Source: Chara braunii
Taxonomy: Eukaryota; Plantae; Charophyceae
Direction of reading: 5' to 3'
NCBI GenBank assembly: GCA_003427395.1
Contig: BFEA01000007.1
Location: 4,145,565-4,209,564, forward strand
Length of the DNA: 64,000 nt
Positions 1,996 to 54,149 of this stretch are shown one piece after another (the first letter of the stretch is position 1; each line of letters opens with the position of its first letter). The notes below the pieces were generated by a model. The model was given only the letters and a program-made list of their open reading frames with translations. It was not told the origin of the DNA and ran no database searches. A program made the position numbers and the translations under genes.

Positions 1996-2848
1996 ATGAA
2001 CCTCGTCGTAGTTCACAAAGCGAATCCAGTTATAGAAGATACTCTTGAGATTAAAGGGATGTTTCTCTATATTATGTTATGGCTAAATGGTCAGCAAGGT
2101 CCATTCAGTCTGCTTCATCATGTGAGACGGGTACGAACGAATAGATGTACCGTTTTGCGCTCTGAACGTTTTGATATCATCACTTTTGATGACGAGGCTT
2201 GTGAGATCTGTGAACGTCTCTTTTAACTGACGACTCCTTCGGGTGTGCAGATGACTAGCGGACGACAGGATCTCACTCAGGCAAGATATCTGCTGGTTCT
2301 CGACACTATGGATGAGGAGCTGATTCAGCGTGCAAAGCGACTTTTACTTGTTCAGGATGATGTACCCACTCATTGGGTTTATTTTGTTGGATTGCTTAAA
2401 GATGGGCAAGGATTTTTTCCTGACTCGCTCGAGGATGTTCGTGCCAATGTGGCCCGACTCCCGGGAAAATTTCATGAATATACTTTGTATTTTCATCGTG
2501 CGAGTAACCTCCAATGTCTTTCTCAAATCATTGTGAGTGTTACAATTACCCTATCTAGAGAGGGCTACGACGTCATTCGGGTTATGGACACTACGACTAG
2601 GCACCTTTTTCGAATAGGACAACCGTTTCGTCTCGCGGATGGTTTCCTTCTATGGTACGCGGGTGGTTCAGATCATGTGGGGTGGACGCATGATCACCTT
2701 AACTTTTGACGACGAGGAGTTCGCACGACTCGACCAGATTGAAGCAGAGGTCCACGAGGGCCNACAACTCTATATCGGCTATACGGTCGTTGAATGGTAT
2801 TCAGGTGCCACGTTGAGTTGTCCATATGATAGAGTCGTGTTTATATGA
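1996..2848 (+). pseudogene. Disrupted ORF of unknown family (~280 codons)
   Basis: ORFs 1996-2226 and 2245-2709 share a frame and are separated by one TAA; 2639-2848 continues in another frame; non-repetitive, protein-like composition; no family recognised. Confidence 0.35.
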
Positions 2849-3694
2849 CTGTGCAAGGGTAACAATAAATAAATAAATACAAAATTGTAGATAGGACCAA
2901 CCAGATGGATAATATATGGATTGCCCTGATGATTGCACTATCATGCTTATGCATTGAGGGGTAATCAAACGCATGAACATTAAAAGCAAGTTGGTTGATA
3001 TGAGGCGATAACTTTTACAGTAGGCCGGAATCAGAAAAAATGTCGAGTTTCTGAGAAAGTCATTGATCATCATGTTAATGGTGAAAACAATGGGGAGTTG
3101 AACATTAAATAATCAGATGGCAAAAATAGATGTTTCATCTCTTAGGGAACGGAAAGAGTAATTATTGTCTAGGAGGACAAAGCGACCAACAAAATTTATT
3201 CACTCCTACATGTAAATTGAATATGATTAAGGAGATGTGGTCAAACCGAGAGTTCAAACTTCGGTCAGGGGCTAGATCACTTGTTGATCTTCATGGTAGG
3301 AGTGAAATTTACTTGCAAAAGTTATTTATGGCAAGGTTTAGTAGGTGTGATGCTCGGATGATTTCGCCTGACTTTCCTTCAATGGTAGTCTTTCGCATTG
3401 GAGATGGCGATATAAAAGTTTTTTCAGTCATATGTGTTAGGAAGAATAACTTCGGCAATTCAGCTCATCAAGTCAAGAACTGGATCTTGCGTGATTGTGA
3501 TATAAGGTATATGAATTTTATTGTCATGTTGTCAAAAATTTGTCAAAGGACTAGGATCGTATTTAAGGGTTTCATGCTTGGTTGAGACCGTCCTAGTCGA
3601 CCAACATACACTCCGTACTTAGGAGATCGGCGTCCTAAGGAAAGGACGGCGTTCGAGTCCACTCGGTCCTTAATCAAGGATTTCCTACACTGTA

Positions 3695-3900
3695 ACGAGA
3701 TGAGTAAATGCCCTCGGCTGATCTACCTATGCGATTGCATCTAAAAACTTTTGTACGTGGGTCAGTAGCTTGGTAGGGATACGCCCCTAAAGGTGGTGAC
3801 AACCCCTTAGGAAAGGAAAGTTTATGCCCCGAGGAAACCTATCTTGTCGTGGGGGACCGGGGAATGTACAGTTCGCGCACCCAACTAGAGCGGCGAAAGG
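3695..3900 (+). ncRNA. Structured repeat motif, copy A (putative cis-acting RNA)
   Basis: ACCTATGCGATTGCA...GTAGCT...GGGATACG...GGTGGTGACAACCCC...GCGCAC; homologous to copies near 6.3, 7.2, 10.8, 31.6 and 56.4 kb, with stems preserved. Confidence 0.5.
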
Positions 3901-5329
3901 ACGATGCAACCTCGCCCGTCTCGGCGGCTCGCGGAGTTATCTTGTGTCATTCCCGAATTGTCTCTGTGTTTATTTATGTGTGATATGGTCGGGAAGGCTC
4001 CCACACTTTGCAAAAAGGCCGGAACCGATGCGAGCGACAACGACACCTCCCTCGCTCAAGTTAAGATGTTACTAATAAAGGTGTTGAGTTCATGAAGTGG
4101 TTGTAAACCACGGAGGGAGAATAGTTGACGCATATATGGGTGATAGCGGTCATATATTGAGAGTGACCGAGAGATGCATGCTTCCTGAAGTCAATAACAT
4201 TTACGTTCTCATTCGACTCTCTTTACAGGTTTTCCTGTCAACTTCACTCCCGTCATGACGACATGAAGAAGTACAAGCAGCTGAGAACACGATCAGTGCG
4301 TGCTTGAAAAGGGAGTCAGATTTTCATTGAATGCATGGTTAACATCGTCTGCACCAGCACCCTACCTTAATTGGTGTCCAAGCGATGATGAACTTCATTT
4401 CCGCTTGTGCTTTCATCAGTAAAGAAGGAAGAGGGATTGAGTCATGTGTTGTCCACAGGATGACATAGCAAATATAGAGGACGACATTGTGAGTTACGAG
4501 TAGAGTAACCTAAGAGCAATTTTTTTTTCCATGAAGTATAAACAAGGTATGATTAATAACACACGAATCACGCAAGTCATTCTTTCGTGAACATATTATG
4601 CGAGAATTTTTTCATTTACATCACATTTATTGCCTAAACCATAGTAATGTATATATGGATATTGACACACTGCAAGATTGTCATTGGTGGCAAGAAAGAG
4701 GGATACGATTCTCAATATGCGGGTATGCTATGACAGTGTATTAGCTAGTTGTGTGAGTGTCTTGGAGGTTAAGTTCTTTTCGGGATGCAAGTGAGAATTG
4801 AAGTTTTTTCCTTTTCTTTTCTTGGACATTATTTGTTTCTTCTAACGGATTTTATTGCCGCTACTGTTACTAACATCCTTATCAGGTAGAAGTGGGGGAC
4901 ACAATGAGCAAATGAGGTACCTGTTGGCATGCGAGAATTGCATTTGCCCAGTATTTATCTTCAAGTTATGAAGACACGACTATTAAATATTAACGGTGAG
5001 TAAGAAGTCGTGAAGTCAAGCCTTAGAGTGATCATGAGTTGAAATGGGAATTTGGTTGATGTCATTGTGAAGCTAAGTTACTCTCGCATCACCGTCTGGG
5101 AAACAATCGTCCCTTGGTTATTCCATATATCCTACATCACCTGAGTAGCGAACTGATTAGATTATTAAGAGTTATCACCTTCCCTCATTTATCTTGTCTT
5201 TGTCTTGAGTTACTCAATATTAATTCGTTTGCATTGACTTTGCTTAAGATTATGCTCTCTATTGATCTTGTCATAGTTCTCAAATTCTCAAATGGGCAAC
5301 CTTGATATATGCATAGTATATTTAAATTC

Positions 5330-6304
5330 TATAATTTATTATTTGTGTGATCATTGTTGTTCTGAATCATAATCAAAGATTCATAAGACCGGGGACCGAG
5401 GAAGACTGCAATTGACGGGTATCGCTCTAAGAAAGACTCACACAACAGAAAGGGATTTAGATTATCTAATTTATTTATTTATTGCAAAATTCATCAAAAT
5501 CTTGTGTGACAGCGTGTTGGCTTTCTAGTTGTCAGAAGTGGCCTGACTATAAAAAAGTGCGACACCACACGATATCTATTTTCAATCTTGCATGAGACAC
5601 CCAATTGTTTTTTATGTCAAAAAGGTTATGGGACGGTTACGAAAAAGGACTAGGCGCAATTTGCGTATGAGAGAGTTGGTTTTATTTTAGCAAGGTGTAT
5701 TGTATGGTTACATGGATCGTCCTAGTCGACCGGCGCTGAGTTTCGCTTGGGACATTAGCCCCAGAATATCGACTCCCGTACGGGTCTTATTAAGATGTTC
5801 AACCGCTCGTACCCCCTATAATTTATTATTTGTATGATCATTGTTGTTCCGAATCATAATCAAAGATTCATAAGACCGGCGACCGAGGAAGACTGCAATT
5901 GACGGGTCTCACTCGAAGAAAGACTCACACAACAGAAAGGGATTTGCATTGTCTAATTTATTTATTTATTACAAAATTCATCAAAATCCTGTGTGACCGT
6001 GTCGACTTTCTGGTTGTCATAACTGGCCTGACTTGAAAAAAGTGCGACAACACACGATATGTATTTTCAATCTCGCATGTAACACCCAATTGTTTTCTAT
6101 GTCAAAAAGGTTATGGGCCGGTTACGAAAAAGGACTAGGCGCAATTTGCGTATGAGAGAGTTGGTTTTATTTTAGCAAGGTGTATTGTATGGTTACATGG
6201 ATCGTCCTTGTCAACCAGCGCCGAGTCTCGCTTGGGGCATTAGCCCCAGAATGTCGACTCCCGTACGGGTCTGATTCAGATGTTCAACCACCCGTACCCC
6301 CTAT
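5330..6304. repeat. Tandem duplication, 2 x ~487 bp
   Basis: TATAATTTATTATTTG..GATCATTGTTGTTC starts at 5330 and 5817; the copies align throughout and end at CGTACCCCCTAT. Confidence 0.92.
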
Positions 6305-6319
6305 GTTACTATGTTGCAA

Positions 6320-6510
6320 CGTACGAGAAACGTTCTCAGCTAGACCACCTCTGCAATTGCAACTGAGCAGCTTTCGCAGGTGGTTCGATAGCTCGGCAGG
6401 GATACGTCCGTCTTGGGTAAAGGTAAGTTGTGCCTCACCAGACCTCTATTCTGTCGTAGGGGCTCGCGAGAGGTACGGTTGGCGCACTCGGCCAGAACGA
6501 CAAAAGCTCC
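6320..6510 (+). ncRNA. Structured repeat motif, copy B (GUGA hairpin deleted)
   Basis: Colinear with copy F (56400-56610) except that the TCAAGGGTGGTGACAGCCC segment is absent. Confidence 0.5.
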
Positions 6511-6848
6511 ATTGTGAAAAAAACATGAAAACATCATGTGTGACACGGTCGGGAGGGTCCCCCTGTGGGATCAGTGCGCTCGACAACACCATAAAAAGTG
6601 CAGACCCAGAGTAGGTAAAATGAAGTGGTAATGCTTTCTTAGGGATAAGGTGCAACCTTGAGAATGCTTTGAGTGTCCTCGAGGGAGAGGGAGAGAGACT
6701 CATTCAGACGGGTGCAGGTAAGTGGGTCGTTCGGGATAGAATGAGATGCCTTGGGAAGTGGCTAAGTTCATTGAGCCTTGTTTTTCCTTCGTTCTCACTA
6801 TTTTTTTCCCTCATCGCCCGTTGTTTTTTCCTTAAAAAAAACATGCAC

Positions 6849-7086
6849 TCAAAGGAAACCAACGGAGTCCCATATCGTTATTCGAACAAGCAAAATTTTG
6901 TCTCACTTTCGCAAGTGTCTTTCTTACTTACCTGCACACCACACAAACGACGCAATCAAAGAAAACCAACGGAGTCCTATATTATCATTCAAACAAGCAT
7001 AATTTTGTCTCACTTTAGCAAGTATCCTTCTTACTTACCTGCATACCACACAAACAACGCAATCAAAGGAAACCAACGGAGTCCCA
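6849..7086. repeat. Tandem repeat, ~108 bp unit, ~2.2 copies
   Basis: AAACCAACGGAGTCC occurs three times about 108 bp apart, with aligned intervening sequence. Confidence 0.9.
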
Positions 7087-7199
7087 CAATCAAGTCAGAC
7101 TTACTTTTTCACCCATGCATGACGTCGACAACTTCACTCTAACTTTTATTATGAACATTCAAAGCAAAAAGGGTGAAGTACGACTGGTGCACATGGCTA

Positions 7200-7290
7200 G
7201 AACGGAAGGTAAGTTGTGCCTCGCGGGAACCTATCATGTCATAGGGGACGACGAAAAGTACGACTGGCGCACCCGGCTAGAACGGCAAGG
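7200..7290 (+). ncRNA. Structured repeat motif, partial copy C (3' half only)
   Basis: GGTAAGTTGTGCCTC..CCTAT..ATAGGGG..GTACGACTGGCGCACCCGGCTAGAACGGC. Confidence 0.45.
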
Positions 7291-7339
7291 TGACAACGAA
7301 ACAACCCCCGTTTCAGCGATTCACGGGATTACTTATACG

Positions 7340-7566
7340 TTGGGTGTACTCCAATGTGAGTTACTCGGCTGATTGACTGAACCTATGTAATGATTGGTAT
7401 TCGAAAAGTAATGGAATACTTCGGTGCAAGTTATTTCACTACTTGTGTGACCTAATGTTATGTGCATTACATAGTTGTTGACAAGAGGAATGAGGACTCC
7501 AGCGTGAGTCATCATGCCACTTGACTATGTGTCATTCGTTTATATATATGTTTGTATATGTATATA

Positions 7567-7598
<32 letters not shown>

Positions 7599-9470
7599 CC
7601 AATTATCTTATGGTATACGAATAGTGAAATAACTCCCGTGTAAGTTATTTTACTGATCGCTTTCATGTCGAACCAAGTAGTAGGAGGCTTTAGTGAAGGT
7701 CGCCATAATACTTGTTAGACCCTATGATGATTATCATTGAAAGGTGAATGAAATGCACGTGATTGGAATTAAGATACTCAACCTCGAGTTATCTTGTTAC
7801 TCGCTTGCGTATGTTTAAAGTCTATACAAATATATGAAGTTGATAAATTACTGACTAAGTACAAATGCTTATCTAGATACTGAACGAGTAGTATGATAAT
7901 TCAATGATTGAAGGGTCATCCTGCTACTTATTTGAATGTTAGACGATGCGTTATTCAAAACTATAGTAGGAGGCTTCAATGAGGGTCATCCTACTCCTAG
8001 CTTGAACTTAAACTAACTAGTGTTAAAATAGTAGTGGGATATTTTAGTATGAGTTATCTTTCTATTTGTTTTCTGTCTGTTTACTTGTCCTAAACTTGTC
8101 TAATGCAGAACGGGTAGTAGGATATTTCAGTTAGGGTCATCCTATTACTTGTTAAGCTACAAGGAGTAGTGAGGGGCACAAGTGAGGGTCATCGTGTTAC
8201 TTATTTGAAATTTAAACTAATTAGTTTTGATTAAGCAGTATCCTACTACTTGTTTTGTGTTCGCATTCATAAAGATCTGTTAGTTTGATATTGAACGAGT
8301 AGTAGGATACTCCATTGTGGTTCAACCTATTACATGTTCGAGGATCTGACTTATTAATATTCAAGCGATAAAGGGTTTCAGTGAGGGTCATCATATTGTT
8401 TATTTTAATCTAAATTAAATTGTGGTAAAAGAGTGGTGAGGACTTCTTTATAAGACATCTTACTATTTGTTTCCTGTCTGTTTACTTGCTCACAATCAGT
8501 CTAATGTCAAAATAGTAGTAGGATACTATAGTGAGGATCATCGTATTATTTATTTGGAGATTAAGCTACTTATTGTCCAAGAAGTAGGAGGAGGCTCCAT
8601 TGAGGGTCATCAGATTACTTACTTGAATCCAAACTGACTAGTGTTGACAAAGTAGTAGGATACTCCAGTGAGAGTTTTTCTACTACTTACTTGTTGTCTA
8701 TTAAAATAAACTTACTTGAACGGATATTAAGATACTCAAGTGCGGGTCATCCTATTACACTTTCGACGTTAAACTGCGTGTTATTCAAGGGTAGTGAGAG
8801 GCTCGAGTGAGGGTCATCTTATTACTAGTTTGAAGTTTATATTCATCTACAATGTAATAGGATATAATTTGCTTACCGAATGTTAAAAAAAATGGTAGAA
8901 CGCTCCAAAGTAATTTATCCAAGTGTTTGTTTTGTAATTGTCGGTAGTGGGACACTCCAATGTGAGTTATTATACTACTTATATGAATCATCTGTGTATA
9001 AGTTTATTTATTGTTACCCTATAGTTCGTTTGCATGTGTATTAAAATGAATTGAGAGGGTGGTTGAATGCTTCAGTGTGAGTTATTCAGCTACTTGTTTG
9101 AATATAGATTGTCTGAAATTGATAGGTACCGAAAAATTTCAGTTTAAATCGATACGCTACTTGCGTATGTCAGATTAAGAAAAACCAAGATAAATAAAAA
9201 TAAGGTTGTGAGCTATCCAATTGTTTGTTTTGTATTGGTCGGTAGCGAGATACTCCGGTGTGAGTTATCTTACTATTTATATGAATCGTTTATGTATAAT
9301 TTATCTATTTTTATCCTACGGTTTGTTTGCGTATGGATTGAAAGGAATTGAAAGGGTGGTTGGATGTTTCCGTGTGAGTTATCCCACTACTTGTTTGAAT
9401 ATAAATTGCCTATAATTGATCAGTAATGGAAGATTGTGGTGTGAATCGATCCACTAATTGCGTAAGTCAG
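7340..9470 (+). repeat. Degenerate array of ~25 palindromic ~40 bp units (hairpin array 1)
   Basis: Consensus about AGTAGTAGGATACTYCAGTGAGRGTCATCCTACTACTT, e.g. 8112-8150 and 8650-8688; 20-70 bp linkers with higher-order (~200 and ~300 bp) periodicity; interrupted by (TA)n at 7540-7598. Confidence 0.85.
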
Positions 9471-10749
9471 ATTAAGAAGAACCAAAAAAAAATAAAAAAA
9501 GGTATTTCAGTAGGGAATACCTTTATGTGTTAAAAAAAAAAAANAAAGGAAAGGTCAAAGCCGTGAAAAAATAATAATAATAAAAAAAACGCTTTGTAAA
9601 CAGATTCCACTTGTGGACTCTAAAATCATTTGAATGGAGGCTCAAGTTAGAGACAGACTGTATAGAGAGGTTTATGAAGGAGAATTATGGTTTGAGCTTT
9701 TTGATGTTAAAACTGAAACTTACAATCATTATTTGAGGATTCGACCCTCATAAAACAATGTGTAAAAAGTGAAAGTGAGAATGTTGAGTTTTGTCGACAT
9801 GTGTGTGTGTAGGTCGGTGTCATACTGCATTGAGGAAGGATATATAAAAAGGATCCCCACAAATTGCAATTGTCTATTATATTTCGGTAACAAGTTGGTT
9901 TTTACCATTTGAACTATTCCCCTGACTTGATACCTCTACCTAAAGACAAACCTTGTAGTCAAATAAATTGTTTTTTTGTGTTCAACACCTGAATATCTTA
10001 GTCGCTCTTAGAGATCCTTTGAAATTAAATGAGGGGGCCGGGTTTAATGAGTCTCAGGAAAAATAGTGTTGCTAAGCATGGTTTGGGGAAGTCAGAGACA
10101 TGTCAATGGTGCGGATAGGAAGTTGACTCTCGTTAACATATGACATGTATTTTGTCTTCTACATCTTTTATGCAGACATTGTGGTATGCATTTCTTTGAC
10201 GTTGGACTTGGACTGGCTTGATCGTGTTAACAGTTGTTCAGACACATCACAAATGTTTCACTAGTATTACCCCTTGTGTTATCTTTCTACGATCTTATGT
10301 ATAAGTGTCTCTATTTGCCATACGTTAAAATGTGTGTATCAAATAGTGATAAAATACACTCAAAAAAATAAATAAAAGTATATATATATATATATATATA
10401 TATTTAAAATAACGAGTTACTTGTAAAATTTATATAGCAGGACGATTAGGTCCGCCACAAGTATATTCATATTTCATTTAGCGAAACCCCTGTAACCGTT
10501 TAATTTTCATAAAGGATATACTAGAAGAGTAATTTTTCTTTCGGCGTGAGTCGTGAAAAGGAAAGATCTGCAACCCTCATAACTGTGGGGTTTAATAGAT
10601 CACCCTTCGATTCCAATGGTCCATGTTTGATCGTCCGTGAAAAGGTCGACCTGAGAAATTAAGTCGATTTAGGAGAACAACGCCCCAAAGTTTGATGTTC
10701 AAATGAGTCAGTCTTAGACATCCCACCGCGTTTAACCTATGCTATGACG

Positions 10750-10885
10750 ATCGAGCAAAACGCCCTCGACTGACTTACCTCTGCGATTGCAAGTAAAACC
10801 TTCACACGCGAGTCAGTAGCTCAACAGGGATATGCCTACCTAAGGGTGGTGACAACCCCTCAGGTAGAGAGTTGTACCTCGCGGA
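10750..10885 (+). ncRNA. Structured repeat motif, copy D (3'-truncated)
   Basis: ACCTCTGCGATTGCAA...GTAGCTC..GGGATA..CTACCTAAGGGTGGTGACAACCCCTCAGGTAG. Confidence 0.5.
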
Positions 10886-13800
10886 GCTCTGTCATGAAAC
10901 AAAGAGTCATTAAAGGTATAGTTGACGCATACGGTCAGAGTGGTGTCTCCACCGACTCAACACACTACCAACCTCCTGCGTAACACGAGGTCCGATACTC
11001 GCCACAGGGTGTGGGACAGTCGTGCCTGACAACGCAATATGTGATATGTCCAATAGTGATTGAAGTCGGCGAGGTGGTTGTATTGAAGAAGACGGGGCAA
11101 ATGAAATGTCCCCCCATGTTGGGCACACTAAAATCGATTGAGCTCTAAGATGTAAAACAAAACGCTCTACCAGTTGTTGATGTCACTGTAATTGTTAATT
11201 GAACACTCATTGCAACACCTGGAGGTGTTCTATTGACGGTTTGTGATTCTTCTCAGAGTGTTAGAGTTTGTCGACCGATTGATGCAACGATCTCTAACGC
11301 TTAAGTAGTTGTGTGTCCTCTGGGATTGCTAGACTTTATACTTTTCACGTTGCATGCTCCGTCAAATATTTGCTTGATGCCCATTGCACGTACGTGGGCA
11401 TGAAAGGGTCATTCTTCAAAATTGGAAAAAGTAAGAGGGAGTTCATGAACACACTTGCTCATATCTACTAGTTGTGGTCTCGCCCAATCAACGATACTGC
11501 ATCAACCATTGGTCTTCAACAAAGGTTTCATGCCCATCATTGCATTTCTTCTCCCCGATGACGCACTGTTAGATTTAGTAAACCATTAACGCTTAACCAT
11601 GGCAGTAGGGGTTCACTTATGTGAATGTCACAAGGGGATGAAATGGCCGTCAAAATTCCCAATGTACAAACGATGACCAACAATGCTGGAATGTCATTGA
11701 AAACTGCAACATCGACGAGTACAACAATGACCAACACAAAACTTGACTTATGATGGCTATATTTAAATACTTGTGGGGCATTTGATCGATGCCCAAGAGG
11801 GTGATCGTGGTAATACTGGCACGTCGGATCCTTGTCCTAAGAACGGTGCAAGTGTGCAGACAACCGGTTTCACACCGCAATTGCAATGGCAGGGCGACAA
11901 CTGTCCTCAACTATGGGATGGCACAAACAACCAAATGTGCGCATTGGAACGCCCATTCTAGCTACAAGCTGTGGAAGGCTAGGCTTGGGGGAATGGAAAG
12001 GAACACTGATACAACAGTTCGGTGCGAATTAATGGACCAGGAAGCCTTCCGGAATGACAAGTGATGGTGAACGATTGTATGGCAATCGCCCTTGGTTGAA
12101 AAATAGAGTGGGAAAGGATGAAAGGGATAGTGGGTGGTGAAGGCGTAATCATGGATGTAAAGGAACGCCAAACATGGGGACTATTTGGCTACCGACATGG
12201 ATGGCATACGGGCACAACATCGTAATCATTTGGGGCATGCATTTTTACGAAACGTGTGAAGCAGTGGGCCGTGAGCACATAAGTGCACGCCTCTGAACTT
12301 TCTTCTGAAGTTCCCGAAATCAGCAATCAAGGGAGTGGGGAACTGCAAGTGACAATGCGATGGCACTTGTCCTTTCGCTCGGGATGGGATCACTTGACCA
12401 TTGGGATGCTAGATGACCGTGTATTCGGCCCTGGGGGCTTGGTACCAGGTACTCTGCTTTCTCCTTTCCCATTGCTGTTTACTCCCTAGGTGGATCTACG
12501 GATATCACAGGATGTCCGCATACCAGACTGTCCGTTGGGGTTGGAGGGGGTTACCCCCTCTACCCTCCCATAATGTGCACCAGACAGTTCCTGTAGTGGG
12601 GGACCCTGGGACGTGGGTGATGTAGAAATGACCTGTCCTGGGTTTCCAGGCCGGCACGGATGGGCCTGCGGGGTCCCCCTTCTGGGTGGTTTCGGGCGCC
12701 TTGTCGCCAAAGCTATGGGCCCCACACCTTATTCGCCAGGATTTAAAGCCATGACCTGTTTATCAATAGCTACAGGTGTTTACCATTCACCCACATTTGG
12801 GTGGGTCGGCCAGATGCTCTCGGGCAGGGCCGTTCCCGTACAGTGGTGGACCTGATCCTGGGACGTGGCGTGGACAGGTTCAGTACCCTACGGAATGAGC
12901 CACGCCGGTTGGCTGGCACTTATTGAAACGGAGGAGGCAACCTCACGAAGATTGTGCGGGTTTCACGAGGGCGTGTGTGACTGTATGAAGTGTACGCCCG
13001 TGCGACGTCGTAAGCGGCGTGCGCTCGTGCGAAGTCGTAGCCGGTGTACGCCCGTGCGAAGGAGCAAATTGAGGTCCAGGCCGTATATCGAAGAGCGCGA
13101 TCATGTTCCTTCGCTCCCCCCTGCTTTTCCCCGCTGTCCCGTTTCGCCCGTTTTTGTTTCACTTGGAACTCGAAACTCGCCATAGGAGGGAAACTGGTGT
13201 AGTGTGAGTATGCGCTCACACCGCGCCAGCGCTGCACGCACCAGCTGTAAGGGAAGCCGGTCGGCGACCGCGGCAACGAGTGATGTGCGCCTTGGAGGAG
13301 AGGTGAGTCTCTTTCATCTCTTTCCCTGTCCATGTCGTTCTCTCCATTCATCATATTTTAGGCGTCCGCCTTTTCTCGTTTCTTCAGTCTTCTTTCATTC
13401 TTGTCTGTCTGTCGATCGTCGCGCGCGGGCGCGTGTGTGCGCGTGCTCTTGGCCGGTGTAGTCAATTGGCCCGATTTGTTTTTGAAGGGCCAATGAAGTA
13501 ATCACAGCATCTTTCTTTTTTCGTTTTTTGCCCGTTCGGCGGCAAAAGGCTTTGAAGATGACTAAATATAAACAAATGACATTTCCGAAGTCGAGGGTTT
13601 TTCCGAGATGTGGAGTTGTAGTTACTCCAATTATTGTTCCCAACGCATTCGCCTGAAGGATGAAAGAAGGATGAGAATTATGATGACGGTGAGCAGGGAA
13701 ACAAAAATCATATCAAAATCATTATCGTCTCAGCCCCGCTCCTTTCCCGCTCCCTTGTCCTTCTCCTCCTCCTCCTCCTCCTCCTCCTCCTCCTCCTCCT

Positions 13801-15081: not shown

Positions 15082-18000
15082 CACACCAGCTGTGAGCAGA
15101 GCCGATCACGGGTTTTGCAGAGAGAACGACCGTCTTCTTCGCGCTGGTTTCGTCGCGTCTCCTTGCCACTCAGTTTCTTTTCTTTGTGTGCGCACGCGCG
15201 CGGGCTTGTTTGTGTTCTCGGCCGCTTAGGATTTTCCCTCGTTCTCATCGATCGGTCTCGTTTACAAAATCTATCCCACCCAGCGTCTAAGAGAAAGAAA
15301 GGGGGGAAGCAACTTTACTACGCAAACGGCGCTCGGCTTGGATCTTGACATATTTGCCGTTCCCGATTTATCATCAACGGATAGTCAGTCGTTCAGAAAG
15401 AGAAGAAGAGAAGAGATAAGAAAAATCTCCTTTGCCCCGTCACGCCCTCCTTTATCATCAACGTTTTTGCCACGTCGTCCTCATCGTCGTCGTTGTCGTC
15501 CTCCTCCACCGCACATCGTCCTCCTCCTCGTCGCCGCCCTGCTCATCGTCGTCGTCCCCCTCCTCCTCCTCCTCCTCATCGTCGTCGACCTCCTCCTCCT
15601 CCTGCTCGTGTCTTCCCATGCTCCGCGTCGTCGTATACACCTTCCCCCTTTGATGTTTTCATCGAAGCCGGCAGCTTTCGGGAAAAAAACAAGAAAACGT
15701 GGAGGCGAAGTTGAGGACGACAAGTAGTAGTAGGAGGCGGCATGCTAGGCGGAGGAAGGGGCGGCGGTGGCAGATGACTAGCACGCGTACATGAGGGCAA
15801 TGCAGCCACGTTCAGAGACGTTCGAACTGGTTAAGGTTTTATTTTCACACGAGGACCTTTCAATCTGAAGCGAAGCTGTAATTGCGGTCATGTACATGGA
15901 ACGGACGTCCTAGTGTGAGTATGCCCTAAAGTCTAGAAACGTGCGGAAAATGGAAATAGTGTTCAGGACACTATTCGGAAATCTCGTCTATGCATTTACC
16001 TTCAAGTAGCAAACTTTTCGACGCTGGAATGCTGTGTGTCGATTGTTGGATTCAGTACATATGTTAGTGGGCGGTGCTGCGATGTCGTCGCGCGGAGGAA
16101 GGGAGGGAGGAGGGGTACAGAAGGGGATTTGAAGAGGTTGGGCATCCGGGTGCGGACAATTCGAAAATGTGACGGAAAGATCCATCCATATGAAAGACGG
16201 CATGAGGAAGATAAGATCTTTTGAGGGGAAGAGGATCCCGACATCCGCTCTTCCGGTTCCTCCTCTCACTACCTTCTCCCTTCTCCCTCACTCCCTTAAA
16301 ATGTTGAAAGGAAAAAAAATGAAGAAAAGAATGATCGAAAAGGGGTTAATCACCTCATCGTGGGAAGGGGGAGTGGGAACAGAAACCGGAAGAGAGGATG
16401 TGGACCGGGGTTGATGGGAAGAACGGGGTGATGTTGGCGTGGCGGCGAAGTAGATTGCTATCGGCGGGACACCGCGTAGGGAAGGAACGGCGGGAACCGT
16501 ACCGAAGGAGCTAGAGGTTTGTCGGGATGCGCGGGAGAGGGCGCAATTGCGGCAAGGTGTCGGGGTCGGTGTCAACAGGAGAGGTAATCGTCGTCGGAGT
16601 TGGAAGCGATCGAGGATCGGCAAGTCGGGACACACCTTGAGGAAGGCTACCTGCGCAGCGATACAAGGTCGCGATTAGAGAATGGCGGGAGGAGGTCGGG
16701 GAGGAGAGGCGGTCACTGTCAAGATCGGGATCGTTGATATCCCCGCTTTGTGGAGGTGGGAGAGGGACAGTGTGATGTGTCTGCCGGGATCGGTCATGGA
16801 GAAAACCGGGGATTCGGTCTTGCGGTTCGGGATCTTTCCCCCTCCGGCTTGTTATTTTTGTCCAAATTATTTCATGACAAGGAGTGGTGTGAAGTAGCAA
16901 ATCTGGACGGTTCTCTCTCTCTCGCTCTCCATCTCTCGATCCCGCTGCTGGACTACGAGGTTTCTGATGTCTTGGTTTTACCTCTGTCATGCCTCTCTCT
17001 TGGAGGGACTACGGGGTTTCCGATGTCCTGATTTTACCTTTGTCATGTCTCTCTCTTGCTCTCCCCCTCCCCTCTCTCTTTCTATTTCTTGGTCGGTCTC
17101 TTCTGTAGAGGAGGAGAGTTTTTTTCAGTGCAATCGAGCTCTGCCACGTTGATGAGGTAGAGGGAGAAGCTGGAAAACACCGGGCGCTGATTTGCGTTAT
17201 TGGAGTTTTTTGTTTGTTTGTTTAAAGAAGAAAAATAACGTTAAAAGTAGTGGTATTTCTCATGCGCCGTAAAGCTCCCACTTATTCTACACCTCTCAAG
17301 TCATTTCACAGAGTCGAACTAGAGTCAAACTCAACGGAAGCGAGAGGAACAGGAGGAGGAGAGACCGGCAGGAGAAAAATGGGTTGGACTTAATCCAGGT
17401 TCTTGATTGTTTTTCCCTTTCTTTCCTTTTGTAGGTCTTGGTTTTTGCTTTTCGGTTATCTTCTCCTTTTCTCACCTCTTCTGCAGCTTAGGCGAGATTG
17501 TCTATACCCAATTCAGCTGTGCAGGAGGTATAGAGTGGCGACGCGGGTTACAGGACATGGAGGAGACTGGTTAGGAAGGCGGCCGGGGGGAGAGGCGCCG
17601 GTGGGTAGAGGCGCCGGTGGGGGAGGGGAGAAGGTCCAGAAGCAGGAGGGGAGGCAGGAGAAGAGGAGGGAAGAGCATGGGTGGGGTCGGGAGGTGGGTA
17701 ATGACGACGGCGATTGCGATCGGGACTGCATCAATGTGGACAACTCCTTCAAACGTATGTTCACGGAGATCCAGGCCAAGTACTGGTCTTAGATGGACTA
17801 TGGGACTGCTGTCTCCCGCAGAACATAAGGCATTCCCATTATAGCCGTTCGTGGCGCGAAATTTGCCGCAAGTGGACCAAGGCAGCAAGACGGCTACGGC
17901 GGAGTGCTGTAGGAGATTTACAGGGGGTGTGGGAGGCACTACTAGTAGGTTGAGGCCTGTCGGTCGTTGGAAGATTGCTGAGCATTGTTGATGATGGTCG

Positions 18001-30549: not shown

Positions 30550-31505
30550 GTGGAAAACTACGGCTGCATGTGTGCTTCCTCTTTTTATAACTACTACAAG
30601 CAGAATCTCGAGGAGGGCATGTATCTAGTTTTTGTCTCTGACAAAGGGGAGGCCGTGAAAACACCCGTAGAGATAGAATCAGTCGTCGCTCAATATTCAA
30701 ACCTTTTTGAGGAGCCCACAGGCGTGGTAGAAAGGGAGGTGGTCCATGCGATAGAGGTTGTCCTAGGTAGCAAGGTGCCTAGAGGACGAATCTATAAGAT
30801 CTCTCCAGAGTTGGATAAGCTCCGCCGCCAACTCAAGGAACTCACAAAAAAGGGATGGATTCGGTCCAGTACCTCCCCTTACGGTGCGCCTGTCTTATTT
30901 GTCCCAAAGAAGGGAGGTACCGTGAGGATGTGCATTGACCATAGGGGCCTCAATGCCATCACTGTTAAGAACGAGGAACCCCTACCCCGCATCGACGAAC
31001 TCCTGGATAGAGTGCAGGGAAGCCGGTACTTCACCAAGATAGACCTGAAGTTCGGACACCATCAAATTGCCATCAGACCTGAGGACCAATACAAAACCGC
31101 ATTTCAGATCAGGTACGGTCTGTACGAGTTTGTGGTGATGCCCTTTGGCCTATGCAATGCACCTGGTACATTCCAGCACGCGATGAACATGATATTTCAT
31201 GATTACTTAGACAAGTTTATCGTCGTGTACCTTGATAGTATTCTTATCTTTAGTAGGAATGTAGAGGAGCACGCTGAGCATTTGAAAATATTGCTAGATT
31301 TCCGTAGACAGCACCAGTACAAGGTTAACTTGGGTCATGAAATCTCAGCGGATGGATTGAGGCCAGATGATGCTAAGGTGGCCAGCATACGTGACTGTTA
31401 CTAAGGTCAGATCGTTTTTGGGGATGACGGGCTACTATCGTCCGTTTGTAAAGAACTATAGTACCATAGCTTCCCCATTAACATATCTAACTCGACTGGA
31501 TACCT
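30550..31505 (+). pseudogene. Ty3/gypsy reverse transcriptase (inactive), truncated before RNase H
   Basis: SPYGAPVLFVPKKGG, RMCIDHRGLN, FTKIDL, VMPFGLCNAP; catalytic YLDD reads YLDS; VRSFLGMTGYYR follows a frameshift. Confidence 0.95.
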
Positions 31506-31561
31506 CTTGGGGATGTTTAGGTTTTATCGACATTTTAACTACGTGTACCTGTACTGCATCG

Positions 31562-31760
31562 AAAACGAGTAAACACCATTGATAGATCTACCTCTGCGAT
31601 TGCAAGTTAAAACTTTCGTATGTGGATCGGTAGTAGGGATACATCCCTAAGGGTGGTGACAACCTCTTAGGGAAGGAAAAAGTTATGCCTCCCAAGAATT
31701 TGTCCCGTCCTAGGGGACCACAGGAGGTATGCCTAGCGCACTTGGCAAAACTGGTGAAAA
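31562..31760 (+). ncRNA. Structured repeat motif, copy E
   Basis: GATCTACCTCTGCGATTGCAA..GTGGATCGGTAG..CCCTAAGGGTGGTGACAACCTCTTAGGG..TGCCTCC..GGAGGTA..GCGCAC. Confidence 0.5.
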
Positions 31761-32639
31761 GTTGAAAACTGTGTTTTGACGACGCGGGGTTTTACATTGT
31801 CTCTAGGTCGTTTTTCTACTAAACTCTAAAGTGATGCGTTTGGGAGGACTTTTTGTCCGAAGGCGAGAGCCGATGCGCTTGGCACTGAGACATGTGCACC
31901 ATCGAACGTTGTTCGATGTGGACATAAGGGGTTTGTTGTTGTTCTATATTAGTAAGTTATTAATTAAGATTTCCTCACATGGTGCGGGTGTTGATGACAT
32001 TCCGCATTTTTTCAAGTTCCCCTTTGAGGGCGACCCAGGCCCCCTTGTGAAATGTGGGGCCCTTCTTGAGGATTCGAGTCCACTCGGGTGGAATTGAGAA
32101 AGCCAAAGTGTTCATAACAGTCACTAGGTTATGGCAGTACTTCAATTTTTTTCTCAGGTTTTGGAGGGTGATGCAATCCTCCTCCTGCTACGCCCAGATG
32201 TCGCCCACCCTCACAACCCTTCGCTTTACTCAACCCTTCTATGAGTGGTGTGTGCTAATGAACACTCTGTTGTAGGAGTTCGTGATCCACCTCTTTCCAA
32301 AGAGGGGCTGTCGGAAAAGTTCCTCGCACCTTGAAAGCGGTACCTTGTCCGAGAGGGGGAGTTTTCACCATGTCTTAAAGAGGGTGGGCCAAAATGTGTC
32401 GTTCGGGATATCCTTCCTGGCAACCTGCCTATTGTTGTTGCTGGACGTAGCGACTTGCGAAACATGGGGTGATGTGAGGGGAGGTGGGAGGGGCCAGCCT
32501 GGCCAATTGCTTGAGCGTCAACATTCTCAGGGTGGAGTGAAGAGCAGACTCTTGATCGATTATATAGATAACACCATTGGCTGGGAGGACGGTGTCACAC
32601 TTTTTTCGATCGGGCCACGTCGGGCGACCAGAAAGCCAA

Positions 32640-33000
32640 GTGGCTGACACATAAGATTTTGTTGATGTCGTTTGCAATAAATAAATAAATTGAATAAAGT
32701 AAATCCCTTCCTGTTGTGTGCGTCCGGCTTCAAGCAAGACCCTTCAATTGTGGTCTAATCTTTTATTTTCATTCAGAACATCAAAGATTATGCAAATAAT
32801 AATCATGAAATTCTGGTGTGCATACATATATCAATTCTGCCAGTTTTCTAATTTTCAAAACTGTGACAAGATCATCACAAAGCATAATCACCAAGCGAAG
32901 TCAATGGAAAAGGAGCAACACTGATTGACCCAAGACATGGGCAGATGAATGAGGGAAAAGTGAGAACTCATAACAATCTCAGAAAGTACAGATGAATAGA
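32640..33000 (-). repeat. Dispersed repeat, inverted homolog of 5150-5512
   Basis: Reverse complement aligns: CACACAACAG.AAGGGATTTA, ATTTATTTATTTATTGCAAA, GATCTTGTCA.AGTT, TCCCTCATT.ATCT. Confidence 0.8.
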
Positions 33001-37458: not shown

Positions 37459-38429
37459 TTATCACTCGTTCCTCCTGAGTGGCTAGAAATAGTTTCCTCT
37501 GTTGGTTCACTCAGATAACTCTGTCCACGTAACGTCCTTCGTTTGTTAGACCACCCACGGAGCTCCTCTCAGTTTATCATCACATAAGATAAGACGACCG
37601 TTGGCGCAAGACGCATATCCCACTACGGAGTCGGAGACTTCGTTCTCAAAGAAGCACGAGCAAAGACTCTTGAGAGGATGACGTCAACCGTTGGAGCAAC
37701 GCCAGTCATCTCTCTATATGTTTTTTCTAACTTTGCGCACCGCACGACTATCGTCTCTCCGCCCCTTTCTCCCTCTTTCTCTGATTGTGACCGACCTCGC
37801 TAGTGACCGCCTAGCGTTCTTGGTTCCGTCCTGAGTTGGCCTCTGGGCCGCTCTCCACGGGCTCAACCGGTGGGTGGACCTTTCGCCACTGGTCCAACCC
37901 ATGTTAGGACGGGGTCTCTGCCCCGTTGAGGTCAGTCTCTCCCTCTGAGTCCTGATCCAGATATTGTTGCTCGTGTTCTGCCGTATCAGTGGAGGTTTTT
38001 CCACCTCATGATACGTGATTGTTACCCGCACCTCAGTTGTGACCGCATCCGTTCTGCGTCTCCGCTTAGCCCGGTTCTTGGCTTTCGTGGCCACCGCCTG
38101 CAACTCCGGGTCCCCTCCAATTTATTCCTCTCTCGCCCCTTCCATGTTAATCTTCAACTTGGTCTCATCTCCCCCGTCGTAATTGAGAATAGTGGTAATC
38201 CAGGGGCCCTCCCCGAACATCGGGGACCGGTGTGTTATGAGGTTCCAGCAATCTGGCCTATAGCCGTGCAACTCGTTCCTGCAAGCCGTAGCAGGACACT
38301 TTCAAAATAGCCAAAGTTTGGTGTTAGGTGCTCACGAACACGGACAGCCTACCACCTGCTCACTTCACGACCCTACACTTCGTCCCCAGATTATCCACGT
38401 TAGCACATCGAGGTTACGTGCGTGCGCCT
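37459..38429 (-). repeat. ~960 bp direct repeat, copy 1 (probably the 5' leader/gag start of the minus-strand element)
   Basis: Aligns end to end with 43432-44383 (TTATCACTCGTTCCTCCTGAGTGGCTAGAAATAG ... TAGCACATCGAGGTT). Confidence 0.9.
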
Positions 38430-41595: not shown

Positions 41596-44383
41596 TGAGT
41601 CGCAGTATGATAGAAGGTGTTTGCGTCGCTGTTTGTGTGTCCAGCCATAACTGAGTCCAAATAACTCATATTCATCCAATAAATCATTTACTTGAGGCCC
41701 TCTGAAGAATTCTTTCCTCTGGTCTCTTTGCTCTTGCAATATCCAATCCTCCTTTTATAGTATCAACTCTCTCGACCAACTCCCGTATGGCACCCACCAG
41801 GCTCTCTTCATGAGTCTCTGCAAAAGAGCTAGGCCTTGAACTAGGTCTCCCTCGCTCAGATATGTTTACCATAAACTTTCTTGATATTCCCTTTTTTTCT
41901 CTTCTTATCACTTTCGACCTCTTCCTTCTTACTCTCAATCCCTTACTATTCTCGTAAGAGATACAAACTCGTCTTTCTCCTCTCTTGTTTATTCTACCCC
42001 TTGGGAATTTTGTATGTAGAGATTATATGCAATAATAGTCTGAGTAGAGAGCAAGGGCAAGACGATTTTCCTTAATCTCCTAATATAATCTTCAATCAAT
42101 TCCCTCTCGTCGTTCCTACTTAGCCTTTTGTTATAACCTTTCGCAGTACCCCGGATTATAAAGTACCTTGTAAGTCTATAATCTCATAATCAAATTGCAT
42201 TGCTTATAGACCACTGCTGACCCTTATGGCAAGAGAGACTCGTTCTTTGGAGAAGTGGTAGGACACTCTTTCAGCAATCCCTACTCTCATTACTATCAAC
42301 AAATAATTTGTCTCAGTCTGATCAGTAACAACTCTCAAGGCAGTGTTTGTCATCCGATCAAGAAAGGGTTGCAAGAACTCGAGCTCATTCAAAGTGGAGA
42401 GATTTTTGTCTAAGATCCGGAGAGTACCTTCTGTTTTGACTACCCTTTGTTCCAATATAACCCCAAAAGTAAGTTGTTGAACCGAACCAGGCATTATTAA
42501 TCATTATAGACAATGTTAGGAAATGTAGATCTCAAAATGAGTATAGTCAGGGATCTCAAAGGTATTTAGAAGTTAAGACTTTATCACCACAATGAAATCA
42601 CTTTCCCTTGCCTTACCTACTGCGGCAATGGCTTTCAATAGAGGCATCCAGTCTCTTAAGTCATTAAAGCCATTAGTAGTTGAGAAGCTAGGGAGTCTTT
42701 CAAATTGCCTCACTCCCTTTACTCAAGTTACCTCCCTTTGTAACTTGTGAAGCCGCTCTTTTGTTCTTATAAGACTGATGTAAGCCCCTCTCTGACATTT
42801 CAGATAATCAATCTCCTCTTCGTAGCATGTTGGAGCGTAAATTCTCACGTCCAGGTTCTCAGTATTTAGGAACTTGACCACTGGAATGCGAAATATTATG
42901 TGATCCTTTCAGCAAGTCTCGTGTCTCAAAATTATGAACGGGTTATCAGACCCAGTCACTTCATATAATCTGCCTTTCACAACCGAAATTCTTGCTACTG
43001 ACAATGTTCTTCTTGAGATCTCTTCACCTTCCATACAAAATCTACCATAACTACTCAATTGTTGGTTTCCTTTACGGAAAGTCCTTCAGTATTCTTGCTA
43101 TTGACAATGTTCTTCTTGAGAACTCTTCACCTTCCATACAAAATCCTCCATAACTGCCCAATTGCCGGTTTCCTTTATGGAAAGTCCTTCAGTTCTCATG
43201 GTTGTCCCTTCATTTCTTTTTTCTCAGTACCATGTTGCTTATTGGCAGCCAATTACTTCCATCACAATAGCTGTTAGGAATAGGAGGAATACGAACTGTC
43301 TCATAGGTCATTGACGTTAGTCCCCACTCCACTTTCTTCCTTTGTTTGTTTAATTCCGCTTTCTCATCGTAGATAGATTGAACATCAATTTCCTACAGCC
43401 AATTAAAAGCCTCACCATCATTGCAGCACCCATTATCACTCGTTCCTCCTGAGTGGCTAGAAATAGTTTCCTTTGTTGGTTCACTCAGATAACTCTGTCC
43501 AGGTAACGTCCTTCGTTTGTTAGACGACCACCCACGGAGCTCGTCTCACTTAATCATGACAAAAGATAAGACGACTGTTGGCACAAGACGCATATCCCAC
43601 TACGGAGTCGGAGGCTTCGTTCCCATAGAAGCACGCGCAAAAACTCTCGAGAGGATCACGTCAACTGCCGGAGCGACACCAATCATATCTCTGTATGTTT
43701 TTTCTAACTTTGCCCATTGCATGGTTGTCGTCTCTCCGCCCCTTTCTCCCTCTCTCTCTGATTGTGATCGACCTCGCCAGTGACTGCCTAACGTTCCTCG
43801 TCCCCTCTTGAGTTGGCCTCTGGGCTGTTCTCTACAGGCTCAAGTGGCGGGTGGTCGCTTCACCACTGGTCCAACCCGTGCTAGGATAAAGTCTCCGCCC
43901 CGCCGAGGTCACTCTCTCCCTTTGAGTCTCGGTCCGGATGTTGCTGCTCGCGTTCTGCCGTATCGGTGGAGGTTTCCACCTCATGATACGCAATTGTTAC
44001 CCGTACTGTAGCCGTGACCCCATCCCTTACGCATCTCTGCTTAGCCCGATTCTTGGCTTCTGTGACTGCCGCCTGCGATTTCGGGTCCCCTCCAATTTAT
44101 TCCTCTCTCACCCCTTCCATGCTAATCTTCAACTTGGCCTCATCTGCCCCGTTGTAATTGAGAATAGTGGTAATCCAAGGGCCCTCCCCGAACATCGAGG
44201 ACCAGCGTGTTATGAGGTTCCAACAGTTTGGCCTATAGTCTTGTAGCTCGTTCCTGCAGGCCATAGCAGGACACTTTCAGAATAGCCGAAGTTTGGTGTC
44301 AGGTGCTCGCGCACACAGACACGGCCTTACACTTCGTCCTTAGATTACCCATGTTAGCACATCGAGGTTGCCTGGGTGTGCCT
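41596..44383 (-). mobile_element. 5' internal region/gag N-terminal part of the minus-strand Ty3/gypsy element; includes repeat copy 2 (43432-44383)
   Basis: GPQVNDLLDEYELFG..W gag-like motif at ~41700-41640; decayed ORFs; internal ~102 bp tandem duplication at 42989-43192. Confidence 0.6.
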
Positions 44384-45404: not shown

Positions 45405-45550
45405 AACAAAAAAGAAAAAAGAAAAAAAAGTGTGGTAGTGTATATTTCCACATCTAGTGGAAGATGCATTCGATTTTGCTCATCCAAGTGATGGATGTAG
45501 CGTGAGGCCAGCTGCTACCGCTCTCGCATGTCGCTGCATTCCAACGCACT

Positions 45551-45608
<58 letters not shown>

Positions 45609-45760
45609 CTTACTCTCTCTCTCTCTCTCTCGCTCTCTCTCTCTCTCCGCCACGTTCGAGCGGACAGGGCCAGCGCGTGAACCAGTGTTCAGTGCCGCTC
45701 AAACGACCTTCGTGCTCTTTTTTAAGCGAAGCACTGCAGGGCGTTCGAGCGGCCCTCAAT

Positions 45761-48897: not shown

Positions 48898-49823
48898 CCC
48901 GCCCAGGTTTTGAACGTAGGACCCGATCTAACTACAATTAGGGCTCTAACGAACCCACTTGATTACAACCTCTGATTGCAGTAGGGTTCTTGTTAAAATA
49001 AAGTTAAAAATATTATTTTTATTTATTTTTTTATTTTATTTTTGCCTGGCCGGGCAAGTGGTCCCGGGCCACTATGGTAGCCTAGTCGTGGAGGCAATTT
49101 GTTGAATGTTCCATTTTCGCCACTTTGCCAGTTTTCCACAATGTGATACCAGTACCCTCATGAATGTGTGCTACCGGTCCCCTTAATTTAAGTAGTGGTG
49201 GTTTAAGCCTGACTTGTCACCAGTCCAGAAAGTGGACACCAAATAAACCAACAACAAAAAAAAAGTAAAAAGAGAAACCAAATGGATCTGAAACCCCAAG
49301 GCAAAACTGTGCTTTCGCTAGGCTGTTTTCTCGGGCACCCATCTTATGCTCGAGTACACGCCCGGGTGCCTGGTCGGGCGTGAACCTCGGGCATGGTTCC
49401 TTGCAGCCCCAACGAAAAATAAAAATAAAAAAGAAAAATAAAAAATTCTAGAAAAAAATATGTTGTGCAAAATTGCAATACAAACGACTTTTGGTTGAGG
49501 GTCACATTAGAATTCCTCACAGAATCAGAGATGGAAAAAGAAAATAACATAATCACAGTAAGGCACCCCCCTTTAAACCTTTTTAGCCTCTTTAAAACCA
49601 AGTTATACCAATGTCCTCCCCCCTTAACAACCAACTTGCAAAAACAAATATAAGCTCGGATTTGGGGTCCTCTGGGGGAGTGCAAAAAACCATCTTTCAA
49701 ATGTTTTTATTTTGTTTATTGCACGCCCTGGTACCCCGGGTGTCAGACTCCCCCGCGCATCATGCTAGGGGGAAGAAGGCTAAGGAGCGGAAGCCATTGC
49801 GGGGTATCATCCGTGAATCTGCC

Positions 49824-49905
49824 CGGTTGGGACTCAAAAGATGGTGAACCGTGCCTGGGCGCAGTGGGTCAGGGGCGTTGTGGAAAGGCCTGCAACAGTA
49901 TCGGT
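49824..49905 (+). pseudogene. Short degenerate 25S/28S rRNA fragment (sense)
   Basis: GGGACTCAAAAGATGGTGAACCGTGCCTG versus conserved LSU GGGACCCGAAAGATGGTGAACTATGCCTG. Confidence 0.6.
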
Positions 49906-50250
49906 TGTGCCCAAGCCGCTCACATGGAACCGTTCTCCACTCCGATCCTCTAAGCTCTCATTTGAATATTTGCTACTATCACCGAGATGTGCGTTCCGAC
50001 CCGCTCCACCCGGGCTCACGCAGGAGGCTTCACAGCAGGCCCCACACCCTCGTACTCATCGAGGCGTCAGAATATCCACGACGGCGGAGTATAGGTTGCG
50101 CACTTCAACGCAATCCGTTTTTCGAGGCTGTTTGATTCGGCAGGCGAGTTGTTACACGCTCCTTAGTGGATTTCGACATCCACGATCACCGTCCCACTGT
50201 TTGTATTAATCAACACCCTTTGTGGTGTCTGAGTTAGCGTGCAGTTTGCC
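49906..50250 (-). pseudogene. Degenerate 25S/28S rRNA fragment (antisense on +)
   Basis: Colinear with reverse-complement LSU: CACATGGAACC, TCTCATTTGAATATTTGCTACTA (LR7 primer region), TTGATTCGGCAGG.GAGTTGTTACAC.CTCCTTAG, CAACACCCTTTGTGG. Confidence 0.9.
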
Positions 50251-52794: not shown

Positions 52795-53065
52795 GATATT
52801 TGCTACTATCACCGAGGAGCACACTGGGTCCGATCTGCCAAGGCCTACACTTAGGCCTAGCAACGGGCCTCGCCTTTAGTTCTAAGGCCAACCAGTCGAG
52901 TGGGAGTGTGACCATTGAATGCCTGAGGTGGCAGTGGGCTCTGCCTGGGGTAGGTCGATTGGGGGAGGCTGTGGCAAATAGCCTGCCAAATAGCATCGGG
53001 CTCGGGTATAGGGGCGAAAGACTAATTGGGCCGTAGAGTAGTACCCTCGTTCGGAGTTGCCCCAC
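52795..53065. pseudogene. Short LSU rRNA-like patches in opposite orientations
   Basis: ATATTTGCTACTATCACCGAG (antisense, ~52796) and GGGTATAGGGGCGAAAGACTAAT (sense, 53004-53026). Confidence 0.6.
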
Positions 53066-53260
53066 GATCACGAAGGTATGGTTGGCGAACTCGGCCGGAG
53101 CGGCTTGCGGAAGCTCCATGTATATATCGCGACGAGGATTAAGAACCAACTCCTGCGTGACGCGGCCGGGAGGGTCCCGCGCTGTCCTGTGCAGCGCCGG
53201 ACCGATGCGCCTGACAGCGGAATGGCCCAATGCTATGTTTAATTGATTGTTTTCTGAAGG

Positions 53261-53862: not shown

Positions 53863-54149
53863 TCGTGCCAAAGATGGGTATAAGGGATAATCATACGCAT
53901 GATCAATTAACTATCTTATGAGGAAACAACTTGGGGTTCGGTGTCTCCTACGTACTCATTGTGGTATGGACTTGCATGTGGTTGAGGATGAACTCTACTT
54001 GTTCTGAGTTTTAACTTTGATTGGTTGTTGTTTTAGATGCTCGCATGTGTTGGAGTTGTAGGAGAGTTCAATTCTTGCATTTTCTGAGGTAATTTTTACT
54101 TGGTTCAATTTTAACATCTTCTTGGTTAATCTTATTACTTGGCTCTGTA

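Follow-up and report, generated by a model that had tools for sequence, protein, structure and literature searches.

Copies of a repeated motif in the window

The stretch analysed here, 64,000 nucleotides of a Chara braunii contig that we call the window, is eukaryotic nuclear DNA that is interrupted by assembly gaps and rich in (CT)n, (GT)n and (GA)n runs; the genome it comes from is roughly 2 Gb in size and full of poorly classified non-coding repeats. Its recognisable coding remains include fragments of Ty3/gypsy pol and a reverse transcriptase (RT) reading frame at 30550-31401, whose best relatives are annotated C. braunii proteins (up to 85% identical). The window also holds a repeated non-coding motif, present as five copies with a full core (A, B, D, E and F), two 3' fragments (C and G) and one duplicated 5' half, all on the + strand (Table 1). 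An earlier note, made from the sequence alone, had reported six places with such copies. An nhmmer profile built from these places recovered every one of them on the + strand and, together with the alignments, confirmed them as homologous, the copy near 7200 being partial; G and the separate 5' half are pieces beyond that list. The latter arose by a tandem duplication whose arms (5329-5815 and 5816-6304) are 92% alike. Pairwise identity among the window copies is 67-78%. The ~200-nt core proved to be the best-conserved part of a ~570-bp non-coding unit, with 62-80% identity between copies and a mean of 67%, as compared to 53-54% in the flanks.

Table 1. Positions in the window of the motif copies, of the candidate insertion footprint of copy A and of the helices of the reference copy F.
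Feature	Position	Strand	Remarks
Candidate target-site duplication, 5' copy	3468-3478	+	11 nt, 1 mismatch
Copy A, whole ~577-bp unit	3479-4055	+	Core 3703-3910; nhmmer; covariance model R1, 195 bits
Candidate target-site duplication, 3' copy	4056-4066	+	Starts where A/H homology ends
5' half of unit	5570-5819	+	Product of a 485-bp tandem duplication
Copy B	6055-6600	+	Core 6325-6517; stem II tip deleted
Copy C, fragment	7176-7326	+	H3, H4 and H0 3' strand; local ~80-nt duplication
Copy D	10536-11047	+	Core 10755-10955; nhmmer and R1
Copy E, 5'-truncated (without 5' half of unit)	31533-31900	+	Core 31568-31771
Copy G, 3' ~150 nt only	53072-53229	+	H3 3' strand onward, plus tail
Copy F, reference copy	56136-56697	+	3' module of composite non-coding element
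H0 5' strand in F	56411-56417	+	Pairs with 56593-56600; closes the domain
H1 (10 bp) and H1b (5 bp) in F	56419-56469	+	RNAalifold, covariation
H2 in F	56487-56520	+	Hairpin with GUGA cap at 56501-56504
H3 (8 bp) around hairpin H3b (6 bp) in F	56528-56575	+	
H4 (4 bp, 7-nt loop), then directly H0 3' strand, in F	56578-56600	+	

Two further copies were found outside the window, both on other Chara braunii-type contigs. A degenerate core pattern, which hit four of the copies in the window but nothing in 100 shuffles, picked out a single contig in a public metagenome collection (BFBZ01003173.1, here L001) and had no match in a viral contig collection. The second copy, H, lies on L003, one of the loci in ~120 kb of sequence fetched around five Chara gypsy genes; the other four fetched loci were without a copy. 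The family is hence ~10-fold denser in the window than in this sample of other Chara loci. Moreover, all seven independent window pieces lie on the + strand (7/7; two-sided chance about 0.016), a one-strand clustering to which an old segmental duplication, or selection for orientation within a long transcription unit, could contribute. Given the shared strand and the local density, old local duplication may explain some of the copies better than transposition does. The genomic copies are decayed relics: the H2 tip is missing from B, and from H the 3' strand of H1. The covariation among them must therefore record divergence among source elements that were once active.

Fold and covariation of the core

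When run on a plain MAFFT alignment of five copies, RNAalifold returned de novo a 7-bp helix H0, helices H1 (10 bp) and H1b (5 bp), part of H2, an 8-bp H3 enclosing the 6-bp hairpin H3b, and a 4-bp H4. H0 is a long-range closing helix that joins both ends of the core, its strands lying ~185 nt apart. We completed H2 by hand, built a covariance model (R1) and realigned seven copies to it. According to this model, the core RNA from the + strand would fold as one domain, with H0 enclosing four arms; the apical loop of H1 opens with an invariant UUGCA. The stem sequences quoted in the earlier note were all found in the DNA, and its stems I, II and III correspond to H1/H1b, H2 and H3/H3b, respectively, so that the first and third of these stems, and the second in part, were recovered de novo. 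The GUGA cap that had been described on stem II is present in A, D, E and F as well as in both outside copies, B being without the hairpin tip.

In the R1 alignment of seven copies, 86.9% of the 352 pair cells held standard pairs, a share that dropped to 37-45% when the partners were slid by 1-3 columns. Sixteen of the 54 pairs were changed on both sides, as compared to 8.9±2.0 in column shuffles (0/500) and 3-5 with slid partners, figures that derive from seven sequences, from an alignment fitted to the structure and from a structure derived from those same sequences. None of the 500 shuffles reached the observed value on any of five measures. By helix, the both-side changes amounted to 4/7 pairs in H0, 2/10 in H1, 6/14 in H2, 1/8 in H3, 2/6 in H3b and 1/4 in H4, and one H1 pair shows five different pair types. 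The stems are therefore kept by paired changes, as had been claimed, at a level above both the shuffle and the slide controls. On the other hand, the folding energies of single copies were ordinary when compared with shuffles of either strand (z of -0.55, 0.07, 0.10 and 0.11), and so it is covariation, rather than stability, that carries the case.

The argument that G-U pairs point to the + strand held in part. Counted by cells, G-U outnumbered A-C 60 to 30 (binomial p=0.002), but counted as distinct pair types per column the figures were 33 and 24, which is not significant (p=0.29). The excess by cells would favour an RNA made from the + strand, and several G-U pairs are retained in 4-5 of the seven copies.

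These results bear on the view that conservation acts on the DNA, i.e., that the stems are palindromes bound by protein, or promoter elements, within a DNA transposon or a locally duplicated segment, with apparent covariation stemming from shared ancestry and from alignment fitting. The clustering of the window copies on one strand, the ordinary folding energies, the lack of a significant G-U excess by distinct types and the small number of sequences (n=7) would all be in line with it. However, short DNA palindromes do not explain the four covarying pairs of H0, whose strands are so far apart, and the G-U pairs kept in 4-5/7 copies would be mismatches on the opposite strand. In addition, no terminal inverted repeats were seen, and the 5' start points differ among the copies. 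We thus consider conservation at the DNA level unlikely.

The pseudoknot that had been proposed was not confirmed. Although its CCCU/AGGG pairing is compatible with 88% of cells, it shows no both-side change and does not rise above shuffles; the GAG/CUC pairing hardly varies among the copies, which makes it uninformative. The CCCU strand is part of the covarying H0, whose two strands have changed in step in B, in E and in L001. Since it has no covariation of its own and its strand belongs to H0, we regard the pseudoknot as unsupported.

Known RNA families and coding capacity

The motif copies matched no family of Rfam 15 when the whole window was searched at the gathering score and at E<=1, and for copies F and A the sole match at E<=10 was a chance one to Prion_pknot (14.7 bits), so the RNA was rightly called unnamed, even at relaxed thresholds. 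Nor is any reading frame kept across the copies, and a coding explanation was accordingly rejected; a minus-strand open reading frame across the L001 copy had no relatives. We conclude that the motif is a genuine non-coding RNA domain, covarying and missing from Rfam, which belongs to a retroelement of Chara; its earlier description as a cis-acting RNA of a mobile element agrees with the covariation, with the lack of an Rfam match and of a shared frame, and with the varied repeat contexts of copies on other contigs.

As for the class of RNA, nothing pointed to the suggested guide scaffold, and the ribozyme suggestion found no known ribozyme core in the copies, none of which matched the hammerhead, HDV-like, twister, pistol or hatchet models in Rfam. 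Hammerheads process transcripts in other Penelope-like elements and in retrozymes, and the transcript of this element could conceivably be processed by a catalytic RNA of a new class, self-cleaving or otherwise; the compact multi-helix domain, its invariant unpaired stretches and its GNRA cap would suit such an RNA. The processing role may even be open, as most Chlamys-type elements are without hammerheads (Craig et al. 2021, PMC8557442). Nevertheless, we judge a catalytic domain very unlikely: the ribozyme models gave no match even at E<=10, there is no supported pseudoknot, the domain lies at neither end of the unit, such that cleavage would define no terminus, and there are no tandem unit-length copies to suggest a circular RNA.

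The copies could also be cellular non-coding RNA genes with their pseudogenes, e.g., of an unrecognised small nuclear or nucleolar RNA, given the conserved fold, the upstream A/T-rich box and the empty Rfam search. This we find highly improbable, since every copy looks decayed (B and H are each without one helix strand), the identity between cores is only 62-80%, the module is embedded in larger repeats and adjoins retrotransposon fragments, and none of the copies can be singled out as an intact master gene. Rfam gave no 5S or SRP match on the copies, ARAGORN found no tRNA-like gene or head in the window, and a B-box-like string occurs in copy A only. Runs of at least four T inside the unit, found within the core in copy A and within the 5' half in copies B and F, argue against transcription by Pol III.

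Boundaries of the unit and its neighbours

We set the limits of copy A at the start of its homology to F (5') and the end of its homology to H (3'). The 11-nt repeat that flanks the unit so defined may be a target-site duplication, but because a match as good occurs in ~10% of random window pairs, it is only suggestive. Elsewhere, H showed a low-complexity T-run match only, and no flanking duplication was found for D, E or G. None of the copies carries a poly(A) or simple-repeat tail.

On a 498-position model of the unit, the full copies and E end at positions 496-498, G at 490 and C at 392; the truncated pieces start at 162 (E), 309 (C) and 357 (G). The family thus has a common 3' end with variable 5' truncation, as in target-primed retroposons. 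Conservation within the unit peaks 100-150 nt before this 3' end and not at it, and an A/T-rich TATA-like stretch is found at the 5' end of the unit.

A sense-strand Ty3/gypsy pol fragment breaks off at 31510, ~20 nt before E, and never resumes downstream, and copy B begins directly after the end of repeat X (5159-5569). G sits in a ~0.9-kb stretch that is missing from the otherwise collinear L001.

The module alone and in composite elements

Copies A, B, D and H carry the module alone. F, on the other hand, makes up the 3' part of a composite non-coding element that spans more than 5 kb (about 51361-56697), and L001 is collinear with window positions 51361-56656 across more than 4 kb of non-coding DNA, hairpin arrays included; in L001, the small hairpins of these arrays have AUAAGUU-type loops. 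The window holds two short-hairpin arrays, at 7340-9503 and 53261-55107, which are mutually unrelated in sequence; after them come repeats of longer period (297 bp; about 123-129 bp). Both arrays have a partial copy upstream (C and G, respectively) and a full copy ~1 kb downstream (D and F). The same module is reused in unrelated contexts.

This layout lends itself to another explanation, namely that the module is the LTR end or the leader of a non-coding LTR-type retroelement and its fold a signal that Gag would read for packaging or dimerisation. The self-complementary UGCA of the H1 loop would then be a kissing loop, and TGGCGCAC in H4 a primer-binding site. In favour of this reading are the TATA-like A/T-rich stretch at the 5' end of the unit, the invariance of UUGCA in the H1 loop, the resemblance of the TGGCGC stretch inside H4 to the start of a primer-binding site, and the placement of C and G before arrays that end in the full copies D and F, which resembles a repeat-body-repeat order. 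Multi-helix folds with a self-complementary loop, a GNRA-capped hairpin and an adjacent TGG-initiated stretch are likewise features of LTR and retroviral leader domains. Unlike in such leaders, however, there is no pair of closely similar flanking repeats (G and F are 71% identical, and C/D, G/F and A/B are all at ~70%, like any pair of copies), and in every copy homology stops 100-150 nt past the putative primer-binding site, with no gag-pol after it. The TGG stretch, moreover, covaries as a hairpin, with a compensatory change in D, which does not befit a site tied to a fixed tRNA, and the candidate duplication of copy A is 11 nt long, not 4-6. L001, furthermore, has no G-like piece before its array, and G is thus not fixed in the layout. 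We therefore hold an LTR end or leader to be possible, though rather doubtful.

Other tandem repeats, at 6845-7086 (107 bp x2.3), 56914-57775 (~440 bp x2) and L001:7178-7491 (105 bp x2.9), lie 0.2-1.3 kb downstream of three motif copies, and the 105- and 107-bp ones are C/A-rich.

A proposed retroelement module that a partner enzyme may recognise

The shared 3' module, the variable 5' extent, the junctions with transcribed sequences and the absence of coding together suggest a non-autonomous retroposon that is copied from its 3' end. Thus, we arrived at the proposal, to which we assign a probability of about 0.45, that the motif is the core of a non-coding retroelement module and serves as a cis-acting recognition handle for the protein of an autonomous partner. 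The module, which occurs either alone or at the 3' end of larger non-coding elements that contain hairpin arrays, would be transcribed from the + strand, and the core of this transcript would fold into the single domain described above. The folded domain would in turn be recognised by the RT or a Gag-like protein of the partner, most likely an element of the Penelope-like (Chlamys) or LINE type. With the shared 3' end as the starting point of copying, upstream RNA would be either carried along or lost. Whereas the copies, their covarying fold, the lack of coding, the common 3' end with its variable 5' extent and the reuse of the module are observed, we infer RNA-mediated transposition, the recognition role and the kind of partner.

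By analogy, the closest described behaviour appears to be that of Chlamys-type Penelope-like elements, which reach a very high copy number in C. braunii, are frequently 5'-truncated, form partial tandems and often contain tandem repeats, and whose non-autonomous relatives have a 3' end in common with autonomous families (Craig et al. 2021, PMC8557442). Like the non-autonomous Chlamys elements, which are abundant in C. braunii (PMC8557442), the motif units are non-coding, are frequently 5'-truncated and insert without poly(A); likewise, they have what may be head-to-tail or partial-tandem neighbours as well as internal tandem repeats, and their 3' module is common to different families. A partial tandem (pseudo-LTR) left by a single insertion of a Penelope-like element may be reflected in the start of B at the very end of X and in the position of C and G just before the arrays, but L001 is without the G piece and X resembles the tail only weakly. 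They differ in that the module is without a hammerhead and that no autonomous GIY-YIG/RT partner with the 3' module was found in the window or the fetched loci. Insertion at (CA)n in the Chlamys style is not a demonstrated feature of the motif copies. Neither the window nor the six fetched loci (127 kb) yielded an autonomous element bearing the module, or a reading frame of Penelope-like or LINE type; Pfam scans of 62 window and 100 locus open reading frames returned only gypsy-type domains. Other points against the proposal are the missing tails, the single, non-significant candidate duplication, the peak of conservation inside the 3' end, the ordinary folding energies, the small set of sequences behind the covariation and the lack of a significant G-U excess by distinct types.

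The proposed recognition from a shared 3' end also recalls SINE/LINE pairs with stringent recognition, such as UnaSINE1/UnaL2, in which a conserved RNA structure lies near the common 3' end, the 5' parts vary and copies are 5'-truncated. Unlike SINEs, the motif unit has no tRNA, 5S or 7SL head and no terminal simple repeat, and it contains internal T-runs; its domain, moreover, spans ~200 nt and five helices, as opposed to the single terminal stem-loop of these pairs. Plant retrozymes, which are hammerhead-bearing non-autonomous LTR elements, resemble it in being non-coding and in yielding a highly structured mobile-element RNA in the green lineage. In contrast to retrozymes, no copy contains a hammerhead, and there is no ~350-bp LTR pair around a body of 600-1000 nt.

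A covarying domain of this kind provides a usable model with which to count elements, sort them into families and find the autonomous mover. If the partner is a Chlamys-type Penelope-like element, the domain would be the first candidate for an RNA feature recognised by its RT; we know of no description of such a feature. Were it no more than the tail or leader of a retroposon, it would represent an ordinary, though previously unlisted, RNA family. A more far-reaching version of the proposal, which we deem a long shot, is that the domain is a new functional RNA of hammerhead-less Penelope-like or related retroelements in streptophyte algae, acting either as a self-processing motif or as a kissing-loop/GNRA packaging domain through which non-coding RNAs of unrelated origin would hijack one enzyme.

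Other features of the window and the outside loci

Repeat X, which is non-coding and ~410 bp long, occurs twice in the window, at 5159-5569 (+) and 32591-32979 (-), the two copies being 71% alike. The idea that it shares the 3' tail of the unit was discarded, as the match comprised only ~17 nt and a terminal string (E about 2.5).

Two isolated fragments of eukaryotic LSU rRNA, both far from any rDNA unit, lie at 49646-50387 (-; 127-137 bits) and 17061-17324 (-; 67 bits). A chimeric junction between LSU rRNA and G was considered and rejected, the likeness upstream of G being visible by eye only and undetected by Rfam. We also rejected a ribosomal IGS/ETS relic, for which the LSU fragments and the sub-repeat arrays upstream had been considered: no SSU follows, the copies are dispersed and most of them are without this context.

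On L001, a match resembling a type III hammerhead was found at 6959-7014 (-), scoring 45 bits (gathering 48.5; E=6e-7). This match, 1.1 kb downstream of the motif copy, adjoins the 105-bp array at 7178-7491 and probably belongs to a hammerhead-bearing Penelope-like element or retrozyme. A link between this hammerhead and the motif was dismissed, since the two are on opposite strands and 1.1 kb apart and the window contains none. On L003, a U6 snRNA match at 2515-2584 (-), scoring 46.1 against a gathering score of 44, lies ~0.8 kb upstream of copy H and could be a gene or a retro-pseudogene.

A (GA)n and a (CT)n block abut at 45528-45660, forming a long perfect hairpin with many spurious sub-threshold microRNA model matches. 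At 61972-63463 (-) there is another Ty3/gypsy pol fragment (RT-RNase H), whose identity to Chara gypsy protein probes is 30-45%. Lastly, an old LTR element seems to have left its two LTRs at 37549-38297 and 43526-44272, where direct repeats of at least 750 bp lie 5.98 kb apart and are 86-87% alike.
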